Sequence record: NC_061443.1
Length of the DNA: 64,000 nt
Reading direction: 5' to 3' (one strand)
The translations under genes and the position numbers were made by a program. This document shows, in pieces, positions 1,890-15,014 of the stretch. The notes beneath the pieces are model-generated. The model saw nothing but the letters and a program-made list of their open reading frames with translations. It was not told the DNA's origin and did not search any database. Every line of letters begins with the position of its first letter. The stretch's first letter is position 1.

Positions 1890-2918
1890 TTATTCCTCCA
1901 ATACGCCACTAATCTCCGCAAACATATTCTTGTAGACCAAGCTACCGCCCAGCTTGTCCAATCTGTCAACGAGAACATAGAGTTTCGGTGAGGTGCGCAT
2001 GTTAGCCCACGTCTTCTCATTCGGGTCAAGTCCACCAACAGTCGGCACGATGACCATACTGAGGTTGACGTTAGCTCGAACGAAACCAATGTCCATGTGA
2101 TTCCTGTTTATGCTTCTGAAAAGCCTGTTGATTGCGTCCAAACCTACAGGCTTATTGAATTCCGTATCATTAACAGTATTGACCAAACTTACAAGAATAC
2201 CAGGGTCCTTACTCTCTATATCAAACAGTGCTGTCTTGAGGTCACCGAGAGTAGAGGCAGAGTAATACGCCACGTCGTGGCCGAAGTCTTTCAAACAACT
2301 ACCAAGCGCCCTCGAGGATTCAATATGCGCAACGTTATCATCACGCAAGATGTATACAGGAGCATCAGGCTGGTACGTGCGCTTGGTGATCATGTCGATA
2401 AGCTCACAAGAAGGGCGACCAACAGTGGCCAGCCCTTTGTTTGCGATAAAAAACTTATCTTTATACATGCTGTAGATGTTCGGCGGCATGTATTTCATGT
2501 AGTCGTCATCGAGACTAAGAATCATTCGTGGGTGAGTAATCTGGAGAACGAGTTGCATACTACGCAGAGATGCTTTGTACTCCGAATCAGAAAGCACACG
2601 GCTGATCGGGAGATACTGCACAACAACGAACCTGTCGTCGATAGAATCCACAACGGAACGAATCAACGTACTGCCTAGCGTAGGTCCTGCGGAGAACTGA
2701 GTGACTATCATCAAGCTGTTCTTGACCATACCTCCAGACGAGGCAACAGTAACACTGTTACCCGCCTGCTCCACAGAAGACTCCCACGTTATGGCTGGGC
2801 TGTCTCGTCCGATATCGGCATGTACATAAGCTGCGCCACACCAGAGACAGGCTCCAAGAAGGTAAGCAGCAATACGTTGTCCGGATCGGCCTCGGCTGGA
2901 TTGACAGTCTCGGGCCAT
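1890..2918 (-). CDS. secreted/periplasmic hypothetical protein
   Basis: AGGAG 7 nt before ATG 2918; signal-peptide-like N-terminus RIAAYLLGACLWCGAAYVHA|D. Overlaps the upstream gene by 130 nt. Confidence 0.65.
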   Translation of the reverse strand: MARDCQSSRGRSGQRIAAYLLGACLWCGAAYVHADIGRDSPAITWESSVEQAGNSVTVASSGGMVKNSLMIVTQFSAGPTLGSTLIRSVVDSIDDRFVVVQYLPISRVLSDSEYKASLRSMQLVLQITHPRMILSLDDDYMKYMPPNIYSMYKDKFFIANKGLATVGRPSCELIDMITKRTYQPDAPVYILRDDNVAHIESSRALGSCLKDFGHDVAYYSASTLGDLKTALFDIESKDPGILVSLVNTVNDTEFNKPVGLDAINRLFRSINRNHMDIGFVRANVNLSMVIVPTVGGLDPNEKTWANMRTSPKLYVLVDRLDKLGGSLVYKNMFAEISGVLEE

Positions 2919-3616
2919 AGCACTTCTCCTCTCGCGTCAGTGACGTAAGGAATGCCGGCGCCTTTACCCAATCCATGACGTAAGGCCCAAACAGTATCGG
3001 CATTCTCCTGCACGAACACTAACCCTTTGACCTGCACATCAGATGTTGCATTCTCCAGTACCTCAACACGCTTCTCAAGAAGCTCGGCATCAGATTGCAG
3101 CACACGAATAGCAGACAGGTTAGAGTTAACGCGCTGGTTCATGTTGTTGAACATGGTGAAGAACGAGTTGTTCATCGCCGTGCGAACGCCGTCCGTATAG
3201 GACTTAGGAATTAGTTCATCGTTGTCAAACGTTGTTACGCCTGTACGAGCGAGAACTTTACCGGTAAGACGTCCACCACTTGCGCTAATGATTTGAGGGG
3301 CAGGTAAATCTGCTTCGTCCCAAACCTGAACAGTGGTCATCACCGTATTGTAGTCGGTCTCTTCCTGCCACGTATTTTTATACGGAGCAGTTGCTGCTTT
3401 AGACTTACGACGCATGACTTTTTTATAGCCAGCGTTTGAGCCGTCAGCGATGATCCAGAGACCGTTCAGTGGAAATACATGAGTAATCGGTTCGGCAAAC
3501 GAAAGAATGATCGTAACGTCTGCCCCTACCTTGTACGCAATATCGTTCGACGCTGAAAGACCTTGCTGTTGGGCAAGGGCAATCAACGTGTCCACGTAGT
3601 TAGTCAACTGGCTCAT
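2789..3616 (-). CDS. hypothetical virion/fibre-associated protein
   Basis: 275-aa ORF in the fibre cluster; short coiled-coil segment followed by a small beta-rich C-terminal domain. Confidence 0.6.
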   Translation of the reverse strand: MSQLTNYVDTLIALAQQQGLSASNDIAYKVGADVTIILSFAEPITHVFPLNGLWIIADGSNAGYKKVMRRKSKAATAPYKNTWQEETDYNTVMTTVQVWDEADLPAPQIISASGGRLTGKVLARTGVTTFDNDELIPKSYTDGVRTAMNNSFFTMFNNMNQRVNSNLSAIRVLQSDAELLEKRVEVLENATSDVQVKGLVFVQENADTVWALRHGLGKGAGIPYVTDARGEVLWPETVNPAEADPDNVLLLTFLEPVSGVAQLMYMPISDETAQP

Positions 3617-8020: not shown

Positions 8021-8043
8021 AAGAGGGGCCGAAGCCCCTTCTT
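8021..8043 (-). terminator. hairpin, possible intrinsic terminator
   Basis: AGGGGC-TTCG-GCCCCT stem-loop immediately after the stop of 8043..10064; U tract is weak. Confidence 0.5.
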
Positions 8044-10064
8044 TATCCAAATACTATTTCAGTGATTGCCAGATAGGTCAAATCGTTTGAGTCACCTCTA
8101 TCCCCGCCACCATGATAGTACAACCACACCTCTTCTCCTACAGGTATGTTCGTATCAAACGTAAAGCGCTGGAGAACGTTGGACCTACTCGCTACATCCT
8201 GTTCTGCTCCTGCACCTGCATAGCGCTCATATATACTGATGCCATGCCAGCCTCCGTTTCGACCGTCATACACCCAGTCGAACGTAATGCTCTTGATTGG
8301 TCTAGTGAAGAAGTTGTTCCACTTGAACCATCCACTGGTGCCGCCCCATAAGTTTTTGTAATCACCATCCCAAGCTGTGAGATTGCTTACGTCACTGCTG
8401 ATACCACGCCCGCCAGTCTGGTCAAACGTGTAGCAATACCAAGGGAATGTATCAGATTCAGGAGGCAGCGCACTACCACCAGCTATCGACACGCAGCGAT
8501 AAGGAACCGTGAAGTCACTTACGTTGATATGTGGAGGCTGAATAGGACAGTACACGTAGTACGACCAATCACATCCGATAGGTGCAGTCACGCGCACAGT
8601 GATGTTAGCGCGAAGCACATGCTCAGGGTATTTCCAAAATTCGAGTGTGCCAGTACGTCCTGCAACAACGATAGCCGTATCAAGCAGGTTCATGTTCTGG
8701 TCAAACACTTCGAACTTGGTATCAAACGAGTTCGCCACACAAACAATAAGCTCGGCGCGAATGTCCGTCTGAGTTCCTAATGCAAAATTATCTTCTGTAG
8801 TTGGATGACCGGCAGAGTAAACGCTGTAGCTCTGGCAAGGGTGCATATACTCACGCGCACCGCGTTCACCAGGACAGTACAGGCTGTAGAAGCAACTAGC
8901 CAGTGACGCAGCATTACCGAAGTCTTTACTGACAACACGCACCATGATATCACACGCAACACCCTGAGGGTCGAAGTAGAAGTACAGGTAACCTTCTCCA
9001 GTCTGAGCATCAAGCGTTGTTGCAATACGACGACCTGATTGATAGATCTCAATGAAGTCGAACGTTTCCCATGAGGTGTAGTCGAGATACATCCAGCCTG
9101 CTACCCAACCGATGAAGTGGTAGTATTCGAAAGCGTTAGAGTTCTGAATACGTTCCGTAATCGGCCAGACAGTCGCATGACACGGCGCAGGGAAGATAGG
9201 GCTGCCGATGTAGTCTGGATGAATGACGTCAGGGAAATTGATAACGTCATAAGCAGCCTGACTATCGAGAGCTAACCCACCACGGTCCGAAGGCGCAGCA
9301 AGACGAGGTGGATAGACTTCAAGGCTCCAACCGTAACCCTGCGTTGTGCGCACACGTACCATGATACGCATATCAGCAGCGTCAGGGTCAAACTGGAATT
9401 TAATGCGAGAACGACCTGCTACTTTACCGCACGTAGAAGCAACACGCACACCCATGTGATATACGTCAACACTCGCACCGGCAGGGGCATACGAAGCAAT
9501 CATCAGTTCGACGTAGCCTTCAATAGCAGGCATCGCATAGATTGTCTCTGTCACTACTGCACCACGTCCATGAGTAGACGCGTATGGTACGTTAGGGTTA
9601 GCGTAGGTACCTAAGCCGGAACGAGAAGCAACACCAACAGGGTCGTAAGTCTCGATGGTTTTGATACCTGGGCGATTAATCGATCTACCAGTCGGAGGAG
9701 CAAAAGAATTAACGAGGCCGAAGCCAGTACGACCAGCGTCAGGCAAGTCGAAGCCAGCTGGATAGCCTTTGAGTATGTCATACTTCTCACGACCTCCTGA
9801 GCCAATCCCGTTACCTGAGCCTTTGGTTGTAGATGTAGGACCGCCACCACATGCACCCGTCTCAACGTTCGAACACGGGTCATCATATGTAGGGTCGAAC
9901 GAGTCATCAATTAGATGCCAGCGCTGACCCCACTGATTACGCACACTGAACTTCTCAGGAACTAGAGGAGTCCAGTCACCTTCTGGTGTGCGTATGAACA
10001 TGGGCGTGTCCACACAGTCATGCCAACCGTTATTCGCAGCATTACGAACGCGAAAACGTGACAT
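8043..10064 (-). CDS. virion structural protein with three internal beta-domain repeats
   Basis: 673 aa; three repeats with pattern (V/I/F)(D/E)(V/I)(Y/F)...(K/Y/E)F..(D)P...I.VRV...W..Y.P. Confidence 0.65.
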   Translation of the reverse strand: MSRFRVRNAANNGWHDCVDTPMFIRTPEGDWTPLVPEKFSVRNQWGQRWHLIDDSFDPTYDDPCSNVETGACGGGPTSTTKGSGNGIGSGGREKYDILKGYPAGFDLPDAGRTGFGLVNSFAPPTGRSINRPGIKTIETYDPVGVASRSGLGTYANPNVPYASTHGRGAVVTETIYAMPAIEGYVELMIASYAPAGASVDVYHMGVRVASTCGKVAGRSRIKFQFDPDAADMRIMVRVRTTQGYGWSLEVYPPRLAAPSDRGGLALDSQAAYDVINFPDVIHPDYIGSPIFPAPCHATVWPITERIQNSNAFEYYHFIGWVAGWMYLDYTSWETFDFIEIYQSGRRIATTLDAQTGEGYLYFYFDPQGVACDIMVRVVSKDFGNAASLASCFYSLYCPGERGAREYMHPCQSYSVYSAGHPTTEDNFALGTQTDIRAELIVCVANSFDTKFEVFDQNMNLLDTAIVVAGRTGTLEFWKYPEHVLRANITVRVTAPIGCDWSYYVYCPIQPPHINVSDFTVPYRCVSIAGGSALPPESDTFPWYCYTFDQTGGRGISSDVSNLTAWDGDYKNLWGGTSGWFKWNNFFTRPIKSITFDWVYDGRNGGWHGISIYERYAGAGAEQDVASRSNVLQRFTFDTNIPVGEEVWLYYHGGGDRGDSNDLTYLAITEIVFG

Positions 10065-10073
10065 ACATTCTCC

Positions 10074-10565
10074 TTATGGACGGACCCAGATGGCACCAGC
10101 TTCGATCTCATTGTCGATGGCAGGGTCAGTGTCTTGCACAAAGACCATCACTTTACCTGGGTTGCCGGGAGCACCTGTTGGGCCTATAGGACCAGTAGGA
10201 CCCGCAGGACCTCTGTTACCGACATAGCCCTGCTTGCCTTGATTACCGTCTGAACCACGCGGGCCCGGGCAACCATCAGTACCACGACGACCGTCACCGC
10301 CCATCAGACCATCAAGACCATCTCGCCCGGAAGCACCTACGCCACCTTCAGGTCCATAGCCGATGCTATGAATAGTAGGCAGCCCTGCGATTTGCAGCTT
10401 ACCGATTGTAGGGATGTTCAGTGCGAGCACACCAGTCAGTTGGTCAAACGACCCACTAAGTGTGCTGTAGTCTTCTTCGATATCGACGGACACGCCGCCT
10501 TGAGTCGCTACTACAGGACCAGAAGCATTAGTCTTGAGTAGCGTAATATCAACCTTCTCTACCAT
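10074..10565 (-). CDS. collagen-like fibre protein (paralog 3)
   Basis: 23 Gly-X-Y triplets after the FD..TG.L...GLPT domain; ends in VFVQDTDP...AGAIWVRP. Confidence 0.85.
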   Translation of the reverse strand: MVEKVDITLLKTNASGPVVATQGGVSVDIEEDYSTLSGSFDQLTGVLALNIPTIGKLQIAGLPTIHSIGYGPEGGVGASGRDGLDGLMGGDGRRGTDGCPGPRGSDGNQGKQGYVGNRGPAGPTGPIGPTGAPGNPGKVMVFVQDTDPAIDNEIEAGAIWVRP

Positions 10566-10574
10566 GATTGCTCC

Positions 10575-11207
10575 TTACGGCCAGGTAGTGCCTTGATCTT
10601 TAGTAGGGTCCACCCAGATAGTCCCGGCAGCAACAGCGCCCGGCTGGGTAGCACTTACGATGATAGACAGACGACCCGCAGGACCTGCTGCGCCTGTAGC
10701 TCCGGTAGGACCTGTAGCCCCTGTCTTACCTGTAGGGCCTGTGCCTCCACGAGGGCCAGTAGGGCCGGTAGGACCCATCGGGCCTGTGCGACCATCTGGT
10801 CCCGTAGGACCTACAGGGCCAGGCAGACCATCGCGACCATCTGGGCCAGGAACACCTTGCTCTCCATCAGGACCGATATCACCATCACAGCCTTGCTCGC
10901 CTGCATTACCGTCACGCCCGTCACGCCCATCTTTACCATCAGCGCCTGTCTCACCTCTACCGCCTTGACGTCCTTCAGGGATATCAGAAGCAGTAGGGAA
11001 GCCACTTACTTTGACAGTCTGGCCGTTAGCGAACTTGAGTGTCAAGATACCGCTAGTCGCATCGAACGACGAATCACCTGTCAGTTCAGAAGGTACTTCC
11101 GAGTCGTCAGGGTTGATGGTTAACGTGCCTTGAGAAGCACGAATGGCAGTAGGCGTAGAAGACGCACCAGCTTGAATGAGGCCAGTATTTACTTTAATCA
11201 GACTCAT
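10575..11207 (-). CDS. collagen-like fibre protein (paralog 2)
   Basis: 34 Gly-X-Y triplets after FD..SG.L...GFPT; ends in IIVSATQP...AGTIWVDP. Confidence 0.85.
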
Positions 11208-12649
11208 TACGTTTTCTCCGCTTTCGCAACAATATCCGTGTTGTGTACAAGCACATCACCAACGAAGTAGCAATCGAATGGGTCAACGTCAATATCAACG
11301 GTCTGCACTTGTTCGTCTACACGGCGCATCTCCGATACAGAGACAGGACCCTTGCGACCAAGAACAGTCTGACCCGCTTGCACATCACGCGCAGGAACAT
11401 AGCGCCACACAGCATCGTCGTAAATCAAAACAGGATGTTCGTGCGTGAACTTCTGTCCATTGATAACGTAATAATGATCTTCTTGACCGAGTACGAGAGC
11501 TTTAACAGTCGCATACACGGTTGTGCCCTTGAGACTAGGCGAAGACCAGTTACGAAACTCTTTAGGCTGGTTAGAATAGCCAAGCAGCGCATCACCTACA
11601 CGCAGTTCTTCGACTTTCTTACGGCCAACAATTGTTTCAACGTCAGAGCCATACACGATACAGCCGGATGTTGCAGTGTTGATAGGGTTACGTGCAACGA
11701 CAGTCAACGCAGACTTAGCAGTGACAGTAGGGCGCGACGTTTGACCCATATCAGTTACCAGACAGCTAATGGTGCCTTTGATGATTCGATCAGCACCCAA
11801 GCCCAGTCTCAGGTAGAAGTTAACAATGCAGGTGTTTGTCTCCGTAGCGTCGAGAGTCACACCTTCTGTGGTAGTGATAGTCCATTTGTACTTATACGGA
11901 CCGACACCGCCACGCGCATTGACAGGGAGATACGCCAGCGACGTAAACACATCAGAGCCTTGCACTGTACGTTGACCAACCATATACAGGCTAGACACTG
12001 ACGCAGCAAGAGGGGTTATCGTAGGCAGAGGAGGTGCAGGAGTAACGTTCGTCGTAGGGTACAACCACACGAATACTTTACTATCGAGTGGCTGGGTAGA
12101 CGATAGCACGGCTGTAGTGATAGGCGCTGGGCCAGTGGCTCCAGTTGCACCCGCAATACAGTTAGGACCGTCATTACCGCGCGGACCGATAGGACCCGTT
12201 GGCCCTGTATTACCGTCAGGCCCTGTAGGACCGTCTGGGCCCATGCGACCCGTGTCCCCATCTGGACCGTCGTCGCCGTCTCGCCCAGGATCGCCTACAG
12301 GACCTGTCTTACCCCTATTACCCACACCACCTGGACAACCTTGTCTGCCAGTCTCACCGTCTCGACCATCACGGCCAGGACGACCGGGAGAACCCGGAGC
12401 GCCGCGACGCCCAGGTTTCCCTTCACCAAATACTGATACAGTAGGCAGACCGGGAACGTTAACTAACGTCCCGTTCTTCTTGATGAAGACCAACACACCT
12501 GTCTTGCTGTTAAATCTTACGCTGGCGAGCTGTGTTAGTGTTGCCACATCGGAGTTTTCAAACTGAACACCTCCGTCAACGCCGACTAAGGATTTACCCT
12601 CGTCATTCTGCGTTGTTTCGATTTGCGAAAGTTTTAACTGTGTTGTCAT
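11207..12649 (-). CDS. collagen-like fibre protein (paralog 1) with C-terminal Hint (intein-like) domain
   Basis: 29 Gly-X-Y triplets, a beta-rich middle domain, then C(IVYGS)...FTHEHP...VDIDV...LVHN/T, the intein block A/B/F/G pattern, at 11240-11662. Confidence 0.8.
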
Positions 12650-14985
12650 TTCGGTTCAACCTTAATGCACAAGTTACCAGTTAGCTTCGAACCGTAGCTA
12701 GTGATCTGCGAATCGGTGATGCGCACCTTAGCGACGATATCAATGAAGCCCTGCGGCTGGTTCTCAATCAGTACAGTGAACATTTGCGTAAGGCTAACGT
12801 TTGAATAAGCAATCACTTCTGTCAGGCTTGCATCAGAAGTAACAACGTTGAACCCTGCGCTGCCCGTACCTTTAAGACCACGACCGTATTCAGCTTCTGC
12901 CGTGCCTGGGATTTTGAATGACAGGACATACTCGATATGCTCTTTCCCGCTGGTGGCCGCAAAGCCAGGACCCAGTTGACACTGGAAGTCAGCGATACAA
13001 GTAAGCATCACACCCTTCGAGAAGTCGATTCGCTGAGTGATTGTCAGCTCCTCTGAATCCGATACAGTCTGGTGTATGTTGAACATGTTCTTCGGGTCAG
13101 CTTCTTCGGCGAGTGCCTGAGTATTGCTGATCGTAATCTCCGGCCACGTACCTTTAATCAGAATACCTTCACCCTGAATGATAGCGGGCGCAGCGATAGG
13201 CACGTCAATCGGAGGCAGACCTTGACGCTTAAACATGTAGCCTGTTGGAGTAGGGATAGCGTCGATGATAACACCATCAACAGAACTATCTTTCGAGCCT
13301 ACTGCCATGACGTTCTCGAAGATTGTGATCTCAACGAGCGTGTCAGCAGGAACAGGTGACGATGTTTTCAACGCATTACCCGCGACAGTAAAGTCCATAG
13401 GGTGTACAGTCAAGCCGCCCATAGCCATAACGCAGTGCGCTTTATTCAGAGGCGTAGTTGGCAGAACAAATGTATCAGCATCATAAGGCAGGCGATACTG
13501 AGCAACACGAATACGAGTAGACCAGTTGGCTCGTTCTTCATAGCGGGCCACATAGAATGAATAGCGTTGACCAGACGGGATAGCTTCGGTCAGCGTTACC
13601 TTGTTACCTGCGTTGAGTTTGTAGACAGTTGTTGGCTGCCACGTACTCCCCACAACACAGAAGACCATATCAACGCTATCAATCGGTTTGTTGCCGAGAG
13701 TAAACGTTGTAGTCTGTCCGTCACCTGTACCTTCGTATGTTTCAAACAGGACGACATGACCTTGAGAAGGCTCGATGCGGAACTGTCTTAGATCAAGCGA
13801 CATACGCTGTTCAGGGAACGATGAAAGCAGAAGCTGGTCATCGACAACGCTGTACGCGGTGCGAGGCTGTAGGACACCTGACGTGCCGACGAATAAATCA
13901 GTCGAGCTATCAAGGTTCTCCGACAGTGTGTAGCGCATCTTGTCAGGAGTTGCAGTTGTCACGACAGAACTAAACAGCATCTTGCCTGGAGGTACAAACA
14001 ACGTCGCAGTAGTCTGACGGGTAGACCCACCAACAGGTGCCCAGTAAGGTTTGTTATCCTTACCGCGCATCAGCGCCCAAGTGTCAGGCACCTCATTGTT
14101 GTCAGGCCAAGGCAGACCCGCAGAAGGCGTAGTCGGGTTAGTGATTCGACGCCAGATAGCGATAGTCGTTTGAGCAGAGATGAATGGGATAGCACCGTCT
14201 TGGTTTACAAGCTGTCCGCCTATGTATTTGAAGTGACGACACGCACCTGCTCCAGTTCCTGCGATTGTCTGAATGAGTACAATCTCATTCTCTTTAAGAA
14301 CACCAGCAAGGCTAGCAATCTTAAACGTGTTAGCGTTGATGAAACCAGCAGTCGTGATCTGACCACTGAACAAACGGTCGTGCTCGCTGAATCCCCAATA
14401 ATAGGAACCAGCACCGTAACGGTAAGCAACACCAGGAGATTTAGAGCCATCCGAGTTAACGTGCATATCAAGTACCGACACGGCATTGAACACGTTATCT
14501 TTTAAGCTCGGCAGATTCTCAAGCGTAGCCACACTCGGGATAGAAGTGTAGTCTGCCATTTTAACAGCAAGAATCTTTTGAATGTCCTGCTGGATATGTA
14601 CGAGCAAGCTCACGCGACTGATACCGTTCGGCACAGCGATGATAGGCTCTTCCAGAACAACGTGCCCAAAAGGACGGTTGTCAGAGAGCATGATCAACAG
14701 CTCACCTACACGCTTCATCTGTTCGCCAGCGACGTAGTTGATTTTAATATCGAAGACAAATCGGGCACTGTTCTCGGTAAGTACCTGAACATAGGACAGG
14801 GCGCCCGACGCAAGCTCGTTGCCAAGTAACTGCTCTGGAACCACTGATGGGTTTGAGCCTACAAAGTCACCTGCTTTAAACGACACTGGCTGAACTGCTA
14901 GTCCGCCAGAGTTAGCGTTCGCAACGGCCTGTTCTCCCTGAGGCGTTAAACGCAGAGCGTCAACGTAGATAGATTCAGTGGCCAT
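12646..14985 (-). CDS. baseplate-attached tail fibre / tail-collar fibre protein
   Basis: N-terminus LTPQGEQAVANANSGGLAVQPVSFKAGD resembles the P2 gpH-type N-terminal (DUF3751-like) region; repeated GDG.TT.F.L...P modules. ATG at 14985 has an AAGGAG RBS (ORF track starts at TTG 14988). Confidence 0.6.
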   Translation of the reverse strand: MATESIYVDALRLTPQGEQAVANANSGGLAVQPVSFKAGDFVGSNPSVVPEQLLGNELASGALSYVQVLTENSARFVFDIKINYVAGEQMKRVGELLIMLSDNRPFGHVVLEEPIIAVPNGISRVSLLVHIQQDIQKILAVKMADYTSIPSVATLENLPSLKDNVFNAVSVLDMHVNSDGSKSPGVAYRYGAGSYYWGFSEHDRLFSGQITTAGFINANTFKIASLAGVLKENEIVLIQTIAGTGAGACRHFKYIGGQLVNQDGAIPFISAQTTIAIWRRITNPTTPSAGLPWPDNNEVPDTWALMRGKDNKPYWAPVGGSTRQTTATLFVPPGKMLFSSVVTTATPDKMRYTLSENLDSSTDLFVGTSGVLQPRTAYSVVDDQLLLSSFPEQRMSLDLRQFRIEPSQGHVVLFETYEGTGDGQTTTFTLGNKPIDSVDMVFCVVGSTWQPTTVYKLNAGNKVTLTEAIPSGQRYSFYVARYEERANWSTRIRVAQYRLPYDADTFVLPTTPLNKAHCVMAMGGLTVHPMDFTVAGNALKTSSPVPADTLVEITIFENVMAVGSKDSSVDGVIIDAIPTPTGYMFKRQGLPPIDVPIAAPAIIQGEGILIKGTWPEITISNTQALAEEADPKNMFNIHQTVSDSEELTITQRIDFSKGVMLTCIADFQCQLGPGFAATSGKEHIEYVLSFKIPGTAEAEYGRGLKGTGSAGFNVVTSDASLTEVIAYSNVSLTQMFTVLIENQPQGFIDIVAKVRITDSQITSYGSKLTGNLCIKVEPK

Positions 14986-15014
14986 CAAAGAACTCCTTGG
15001 GTTTTAACTGTTCT

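Follow-up and report, generated by a model that had tools for sequence, protein, structure and literature searches.

A Hint domain of the bacterial intein-like kind and a short lysine-bearing tail at the C-terminus of a collagen-like phage fibre protein

Gp110 (YP_010300551.1), a 480-residue collagen-like fibre protein encoded among the baseplate and fibre genes of a jumbo myovirus of the "hairy" kind, ends in a Hint domain that is followed by just ten residues. The virus is Erwinia phage pEa_SNUABM_2 (NC_061443.1; genus Alexandravirus; 265 kb). The analysis covers a 64,000-nucleotide stretch of its genome (the window; window position equals record position minus 62000), in which gene 110 occupies positions 11207..12649 of the minus strand, the strand to which all the parts of gp110 located below also belong. 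Over window positions 10000-15000 the identity with that record is 100%. Pfam, PDB, AlphaFold2 (AF2), Foldseek and profile matches place the Hint domain (residues 330-470; 11240..11662) with the type A bacterial intein-like (BIL) domains. We propose that the C-terminal 151 residues of gp110, comprising this domain and a short tail that bears lysine, constitute a single-turnover self-processing module, that is, a cap that removes itself from the fibre. Our confidence in that proposal is about evenly divided.

The Hint domain and its kin

The catalytic equipment of the domain is complete. Cys330 (11660..11662), the predicted nucleophile of an N-S acyl shift, is preceded by the residues ATSG and is invariant in 33 aligned homologues. 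In the block B motif T402-H-E-H405 (11435..11446) the threonine is likewise invariant and the histidine is conserved in at least 90% of these homologues, while His469-Asn470 (11240..11245), the predicted site of asparagine cyclisation and C-terminal cleavage, is invariant at both positions. An initial annotation, made from the letters alone, had picked out the Cys1 codon, the FTHEH of block B, a block F-like stretch (VDIDV..FDCYFVG), and a terminal His-Asn that is followed by Thr471 and the remainder of a ten-residue tail; all of these are present in the minus strand, with the stop codon at 11207-11209. It had also put the length of the domain at about 141 residues, which is exact, with no endonuclease insert, and it correctly recognized that a virion fibre protein with a collagen part ends, at its C-terminus, in an intein-like/BIL Hint domain that has its full set of catalytic residues. 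Its placing of the domain at the tip of a collagen fibre holds for the C-terminal position but not for the implied adjacency: in the full-length AF2 model, about 150 beta-rich, Ig-like residues separate the collagen from the Hint domain.

That the C-terminal domain of gp110 has the Hint fold is secure. Profile search and structure prediction, the checks that the initial annotation had suggested, both yield it. With the single sequence as query, Pfam gives PT-HINT (PF07591) at E 5.7e-5, with 135 of the 137 profile positions aligned, and Hint_2 at E 3.7e-4, though both fall below their gathering scores; a PDB search finds the BIL domain 2lwy from end to end at E 2.7e-5 and about 25% identity. 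A profile built from 42 relatives raises the match to 2lwy to E 1.9e-19 and finds BIL2 of BUBL at E 2.3e-16, with the true inteins following at E 1.1e-11 or weaker and as partial matches only. The AF2 model of residues 317-480 has a mean predicted local distance difference test (pLDDT) score of 90.9 and a predicted template-modelling (pTM) score of 0.85; in the model of the full-length protein, pLDDT over residues 330-470 is 84-94. When the Hint model is submitted to Foldseek, 2lwy again comes first (E 3.4e-9, template-modelling (TM) score 0.82), then BIL2, then inteins and the Hog domain of Hedgehog (1at0; E 1.4e-5, TM 0.71), among 58 Hint structures in the PDB at E<=1e-3. The Hint part of gp110 has no match in NCBIfam, and no second Hint domain was found in the six frames of the window. 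One other PDB entry deserves mention: 8w20_A, a 1368-residue "Intein C-terminal splicing domain-containing protein", is matched by the clade profile over residues 1077-1224 (E 1.3e-14) and may be the nearest solved multi-domain relative.

Is this a mobile intein or a fixed module? A search with the Hint domain as query finds 55 phage records (48 Erwinia, two Dickeya, one Yersinia, one Alcaligenes and one Salmonella phage, together with NCTB and an uncultured 484-kb phage), and each of these covers at least 80% of the query. A search with only the middle region of gp110 found no Hint-free allele: its 18 homologues are all 477-480 residues long, which is the length of gp110 with its Hint domain. 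The domain is under purifying selection, with ratios of nonsynonymous to synonymous substitution (dN/dS, by the Nei-Gojobori method) of 0.070 in comparison with SNUABM_35, 0.074 with Alexandra and 0.086 with Y3; these resemble the values for the rest of gp110, and the Hint domain is not more variable than the remainder of the protein. The residue that directly follows His-Asn (+1) is threonine in the close relatives (P0001-P0019), alanine in P0020 and P0022, serine in P0021, methionine in P0023 and in Alcaligenes phage Afa-NA1, valine in Yersinia phage fHe-Yen9-02, and alanine in NCTB; in the wider clade that is described below, Cys, Ser or Thr occupies this position in just 15 of 109 short tails.

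The lack of a +1 nucleophile is what sets BIL domains apart from inteins; the type A BIL domains keep His-Asn and can splice by way of the freed alpha-amine, but mostly cleave (PMC4031507). Since it is fixed, free of an endonuclease, under purifying selection and, in its relatives, deprived of the +1 nucleophile, the Hint domain of gp110 is not a mobile intein; the same properties match it to the type A BIL domains, which are self-cleaving modules. The absence of a conserved +1 nucleophile is in this instance a property of the family, since the copy in the window itself has Thr. The likeness to the type A BIL domain of C. thermocellum (2lwy) extends from sequence, profile and fold, for each of which it is the best match, through Cys1, TxxH, the C-terminal His-Asn, the unconserved +1 residue and the missing endonuclease, to residence as a fixed element of surface or extracellular-type proteins rather than of housekeeping enzymes. 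The differences are that the phage Hint domain is the last folded unit of its protein, followed by 1-20 residues with a nearly invariant lysine, and that the host proteins here are phage fibre and tail proteins. With the canonical mini-inteins (gp41-1, DnaB, RecA) gp110 shares the fold and the catalytic residues, and in the window copy even Thr+1, but it lies nearer in profile to the known BIL domains. The marks of a canonical intein (sporadic distribution; a conserved Cys, Ser or Thr at +1 with a functional C-extein; and a homing endonuclease, which is optional, mini-inteins being without it) are absent here, and the domain does not occupy a conserved site in an enzyme.

Judged by sequence, gp110 contributes one member to a large clade of Hint domains that is mostly of phage. 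A phmmer search with the 164-residue C-terminal piece of gp110, tail included, against 1.84 billion cluster representatives returns 555 clusters at E<=1e-3; the statistics of the clade refer to 189 domain copies in the best 150 of these 555 (protein clusters at the 50% identity level). The catalytic columns are conserved at 93-99% across the 189 copies: Cys1 in 123/125, the Thr and His of block B in 173/184 and 170/185, respectively, the penultimate His in 171/174 and the terminal Asn in 172/173. Glycine is at -1 in 76 of 115 aligned copies. At least 109 proteins of the clade end 1-20 residues (median 7) after His-Asn. The domains that lie upstream of Hint in 79 relatives are collagen (14 proteins), fn3, Ig, PKD, Calx-beta, BACON and phage tail-collar, and 16 clade proteins have G-X-Y runs placed as they are in gp110; PT-HINT is matched by 46 of the 79 at E<=1e-3 (best E 1e-39). 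The genomic surroundings of two members were read. The gene for P0032 closes a baseplate/fibre module (Phage_base_V, gp25-like, Tail_P2_I; locus L007) and comes directly after that for a fibre that bears Peptidase_S74; P0028 comes after a T4 gp13-like neck gene. In BFVD, the proteins matched by fold come for the most part from uncultured tailed phages and are named "Hint domain", "Fibronectin type III" or "PASTA"; three proteins of NCTB are also among them. In NCTB the Hint domain ends a 1304-residue protein whose first 470 residues are homologous not to gp110 but to gp107 of the window (35% identity, E 8e-75). The same Hint domain is thus found on different fibre and tail proteins, so that the domain with its tail is a portable C-terminal module of such proteins. 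Some members of the clade (P0024, P0047, P0054, P0057, P0090, P0128 and others) have two to six Hint copies in tandem, joined by Gly/Ser-rich linkers that start with lysine; in P0054 the Cys of the next Hint domain comes just three residues after His-Asn-Lys.

The tail and its lysine

The tail of gp110 (residues 471-480; 11210..11239) has Thr at +1 and lysines at +6 and +9. Lysine is present in 107 of the 109 short tails of the clade; it is the last residue in 26 and the next-to-last in 42, and 67 of the 109 have a final lysine at one or the other of these positions. It makes up 14.4% of tail residues (4.2% of the whole proteins), while arginine accounts for 2.0% and appears in the last and next-to-last positions in three and zero cases, respectively. 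For comparison, 88 other open reading frames (ORFs) were taken from the window and from the phage loci: 8%, 15% and 24% of them have lysine in the last 2, 3 and 7 residues (Fisher p for tails versus control 1e-15, 2e-14 and 4e-31, respectively, to be read with the proviso that the cluster representatives are mutually related rather than independent, and that the presence of the tail in the query introduces a small bias). A general bias of C-termini or of ribosome-binding sites, considered as the whole cause of the enrichment, is ruled out by this control. In internal and tandem copies of the domain, lysine directly follows His-Asn, the place of the intein nucleophile, in 59 of 110 sites defined by pattern. 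That arginine so rarely stands in for lysine points to a chemical role for the tail lysine rather than one of charge.

Within the lineage of gp110 the evidence is less easily read. Identity of the tail is 90-100%, and this holds for Yoloswag as well, whose Hint domain is 66% identical. However, the gene arrangement is tight (the start of gene 110 overlaps the stop of gene 111, at 12646-12649, and its stop overlaps the start of gene 109), and a GGAG ribosome-binding site for gp109 (11216..11219, minus strand) lies inside the tail codons for A-E-K, 8 nucleotides before the gp109 ATG (11205-11207). The synonymous divergence (dS) of the tail is 0 to 0.58, versus 0.7 to over 2.7 in the Hint domain. 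Local conservation of the tail is therefore exerted in part at the level of the RNA, and is confounded. P0032 is instructive in this regard: its downstream gene is convergent, so that no ribosome-binding site constrains the tail, and the lysine is nevertheless kept.

Self-removal and the alternatives

How might such a module operate? After the chain has folded and, probably, trimerised, Cys330 would attack the carbonyl of Gly329 in an N-S acyl shift, generating a thioester; cyclisation of Asn470 would cut the chain after the Hint domain; either water or an amine, whether that of a tail lysine or the freed alpha-amine, would resolve the thioester; and the 15.9-kDa Hint domain would depart, leaving a mature fibre chain that ends at Gly329. 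The computed mass of the full-length protein is 50.5 kDa, that of residues 1-329 is 33.6 kDa (34.6 kDa with the tail) and that of the tail 1.1 kDa. The Hint domain would serve as a C-terminal cap for assembly or quality control, aiding or checking folding and trimerisation, and then be removed. The identity of the domain, its conserved catalytic residues, the purifying selection, its fixation in all homologues, the setting among fibre genes and the portability of the module are borne out by the data; the cleavage, its timing, the part played as a chaperone and the fate of the tail are what we infer.

There are models for such a device. Peptidase_S74 of phage tail fibres and endosialidases and the C-propeptide of procollagen are C-terminal modules of trimeric fibres that help assembly and are then removed. 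They are functional analogues of the Hint cap, with no relation to it in sequence or fold (gp110 has no Pfam match to Peptidase_S74), and their removal differs from the thioester formation and asparagine cyclisation of Hint: S74 relies on a Ser-Lys dyad, and the C-propeptide depends on a protease separate from itself.

Several considerations weigh against the self-removing cap. 1) As a single sequence, gp110 scores below the Pfam gathering thresholds for PT-HINT (23.8 bits, with a cut-off of 27.7) and for Hint_2. 2) AF2 assigns the tail no confident position (pLDDT <50 when the whole protein is modelled and about 61 when the domain is). 3) The proposed role in assembly, or as a chaperone, is only an analogy with S74 and the procollagen C-propeptide. 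4) The open-access literature yielded no proteomic or biochemical data on processing for this phage group, and no virion proteomics of the Y3, Yoloswag or Alexandra group. 5) Conservation of the catalytic residues does not exclude a domain that is kept on the virion until it is triggered. The initial annotation had offered programmed auto-processing, splicing included, as its interpretation. Auto-processing fits the conserved catalytic columns and the dN/dS of 0.07-0.09; classical splicing through Thr+1, on the other hand, is unlikely to be the selected reaction, because relatives have Val, Ala, Met or Ser in its place.

The serious alternative to the self-removing cap, or refinement of it, is lysine-directed ligation, in which the Gly329 thioester would be passed to the epsilon-amine of a lysine in the protein's own tail (making a branched cap), in a neighbouring chain or in a partner protein; we regard it as distinctly less probable. 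In this form the Hint domain would be an ATP-free, single-use ligase that locks the fibre tip covalently, with the conserved tail lysine as acceptor. The precedent is BIL2 of Tetrahymena thermophila BUBL1 (6y75, 6tmm), which is second-best as a match in fold and profile, also has a small residue (Gly) at -1, and is reported to be regulated by Zn. Unlike the phage Hint domain, BIL2 is eukaryotic and resides in a polyubiquitin-like locus, flanked by ubiquitin-like domains. It is reported to join the C-terminus of the upstream domain to the epsilon-amine of a downstream lysine in an isopeptide bond (PMC8616854), so that there is precedent for the conserved lysine of the phage tails, which is likewise downstream, to have a role. 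The closeness of BIL2, the preference for lysine over arginine and the lysine at +1 of internal copies are the reasons for taking ligation seriously; the placement of lysine in the tails, far above its frequency in the control ORFs, the frequent glycine at -1 and the lysine of P0032 are also in its favour. What tells against it is that its support is drawn throughout from the statistics of sequences, with the relatedness of representatives and the slight bias of the query that have already been noted; that the gp109 ribosome-binding site and low dS confound conservation of the local tail; that the AF2 model does not put a lysine near Cys330 with any confidence; and that it is not clear what a fibre would gain from a branched peptide of 1 kDa as its cap. 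Extended to the clade, the proposal would be that Hint with its lysine tail is a widespread, phage-borne, ATP-independent single-use ligase, transferring a C-terminal glycine from its thioester to a lysine amine and placing an isopeptide lock at the tip during assembly; this too we advance tentatively.

The remaining possibilities are less likely. One is that the Hint domain is never cleaved and persists as the distal tip of the fibre, where it could be a knob with a structural or receptor-binding function, or else a latent thioester "warhead" that is set off only by contact with the host surface. The domain is, after all, at the distal end of a fibre protein whose RefSeq and PHROG label is "virion structural protein", and Hedgehog-type Hint domains do give their acyl group to an outside nucleophile. 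Hog shares with gp110 the Hint fold and a Gly-Cys cleavage site, but it lacks the C-terminal His-Asn and has a sterol-recognition region, where gp110 has His-Asn and its ten-residue tail only. A permanent tip nevertheless seems improbable: conservation centres on the catalytic residues of both junctions, including a His-Asn that nothing but C-terminal cleavage requires; tips that bind receptors usually diverge fastest between phages of different hosts, while this domain varies no more than the rest of gp110; and unrelated fibres, on phages of many environments, bear the domain too.

A canonical, selfish class 1 mini-intein, splicing through Thr471 so as to join the ten-residue C-extein to Gly329 by a normal peptide bond, is still harder to entertain. 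Cys1, TxxH, His-Asn and Thr+1 are all present in the window protein, Thr+1 is kept by P0001-P0019, and true inteins are among the weaker structural matches. But Val, Ala, Met or Ser takes the place of Thr+1 in relatives with an otherwise intact Hint domain, no homologue found lacks the domain and there is neither endonuclease nor intein-free allele, the profile is nearer to BIL domains (E 1e-19 to 1e-16) than to inteins, which it matches in part and at E 1e-11 or weaker, the "C-extein" amounts to 1-20 variable residues across the clade, and the domain caps fibre proteins that are unrelated to each other.

Finally, pretoxin HINT (PT-HINT), which is the best Pfam family, aligned over nearly its whole profile and matched by many relatives, serves as a peptidase that processes filamentous proteins close to their C-terminus (PMC3482391), and a device of that sort might free the well-conserved C-terminal 10-mer as a functional small peptide; that is very improbable, since no toxin or other domain follows the Hint of gp110, which belongs to a phage virion gene module rather than a secretion system, since clade tails of 1-20 residues have only lysine in common (some being a single Lys), and since the overlapping ribosome-binding site explains a part of the local conservation.

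The fibre genes, and what a Hint cap would mean

The remainder of gp110, which matches phrog_38766 over its full length (E 2e-255), is built in three parts. Residues 1-75 (12425..12649), which are common to the downstream collagen-like paralogues gp109 and gp108 (BLASTP, gp110 versus gp109: E 3e-22, from residue 46), are likely to be the attachment part; the full-length AF2 model has a small beta domain at about residues 40-74 (pLDDT about 75). The collagen-like region (residues 76-175; 12125..12424; Pfam Collagen, E 8.6e-14) contains an unbroken G-X-Y run from residue 77 to 163. The beta-rich middle region (residues 176-329; 11663..12124) is all beta strands from about 179 to 321 (AF2 pLDDT 80-95), with an Ig-like beta-sandwich at about 215-321 for which the Foldseek matches to Ig repeats are weak, and it ends at Gly329, the -1 residue, which is kept in at least 90% of aligned homologues. 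There are no broken genes in the region; a 252-residue ORF on the plus strand (11243-12001), antisense to the Hint-coding region, is regarded as a shadow ORF.

Gene 110 lies in a minus-strand run of tail genes. Upstream are gp111, which has a weak match to a tail-collar-fibre N-terminal domain, and, beyond it, a 1511-residue tail protein and a PAAR protein. Downstream are gp109 (10575..11207; 210 residues) and gp108 (10074..10565; 163 residues), both on the minus strand, both annotated "tail fiber" and neither with a Hint domain. The three consecutive paralogues (10074-12649) have in common the N-terminal domain, a short motif after the collagen, and one Cys each, which comes some ten triplets along the G-X-Y run; gp110 alone has the Ig-like and Hint parts. 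A heterotrimer of the three was considered and set aside. The G-X-Y runs of the three are of different lengths. Phages of the Y3, AD1, Yoloswag and Alexandra lineage are the "hairy Myoviridae", whose hair-forming proteins are unknown (PMC6143709); one may speculate that gp110, gp109 and gp108 are candidates for these unexplained hairs.

The cluster offers some further observations. No Hint domain was found in gp107 (8043-10064, minus strand), although homologues of it in Yoloswag (L011 5057-5483) and Afa-NA1 (L002 5649-6875) are labelled "large intein domain protein"; the label can be traced to the 1304-residue protein of NCTB (L003 569-4483), in which a gp107-like N-terminal part goes together with a C-terminal Hint cap. 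Two small phages with stated hosts that are unrelated, Alcaligenes phage Afa-NA1 (78 kb) and Salmonella phage Sen-NF (108 kb), have identical Hint scores (35% identity, E 3e-23), and the cassette of Afa-NA1 has the same order as that of the jumbo phages: a Hint-capped collagen protein, two short collagen proteins and a gp107-like protein. A fibre cassette that is shared or has been transferred would explain this, or else a problem with the records. Free-standing HNH endonuclease genes are found within the fibre cluster at positions that differ from phage to phage, in the window at about 2789-3616 (gp102) and in Yoloswag between the gp108 and gp107 homologues (L011 4190-5047).

How much of this is new? 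The Hint/BIL kind of domain is itself well known. The GenBank record of Y3 already describes the orthologue of gp110 (L010 1556-2992) as "putative phage tail protein, contains intein domain", and "large intein domain protein" is a label on the records of NCTB and others; in the papers on CBB and PaBG, "intein" refers to terminase inteins or to the absence of inteins. In the open-access literature we found no paper that describes a Hint cap recurring at the C-termini of phage fibre proteins, none that classes such a domain with the type A BIL domains instead of the inteins, and none that gives the rule of the lysine tail; within that literature, these three appear to be new.

If the last 150 or so residues of such fibres are absent from virions, then the masses and tip structures that are predicted for them are wrong. 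Small Hint domains that are free of an endonuclease and naturally C-terminal are also of interest as tools of protein chemistry. Phage fibres are known to mature with the help of separate chaperones or of S74, a chaperone that cleaves itself. A thioester-forming Hint cap, if that is what gp110 carries, would be a third route. BIL domains have, to our knowledge, so far been without a clear biological role; in the clade they occur naturally by the hundreds in a single defined setting, as the C-terminal ends of phage fibre and adhesin-like proteins. The nearly invariant lysine of the tail makes a testable prediction about the nucleophile that resolves the thioester, and ties the BIL domains of bacterial viruses to the BIL2 of ciliates. 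The "ubiquitination by protein splicing" of BUBL has, as far as we know, been reported only from ciliates until now; should the Hint domain prove to be an isopeptide ligase, the viruses of bacteria would have its counterpart.

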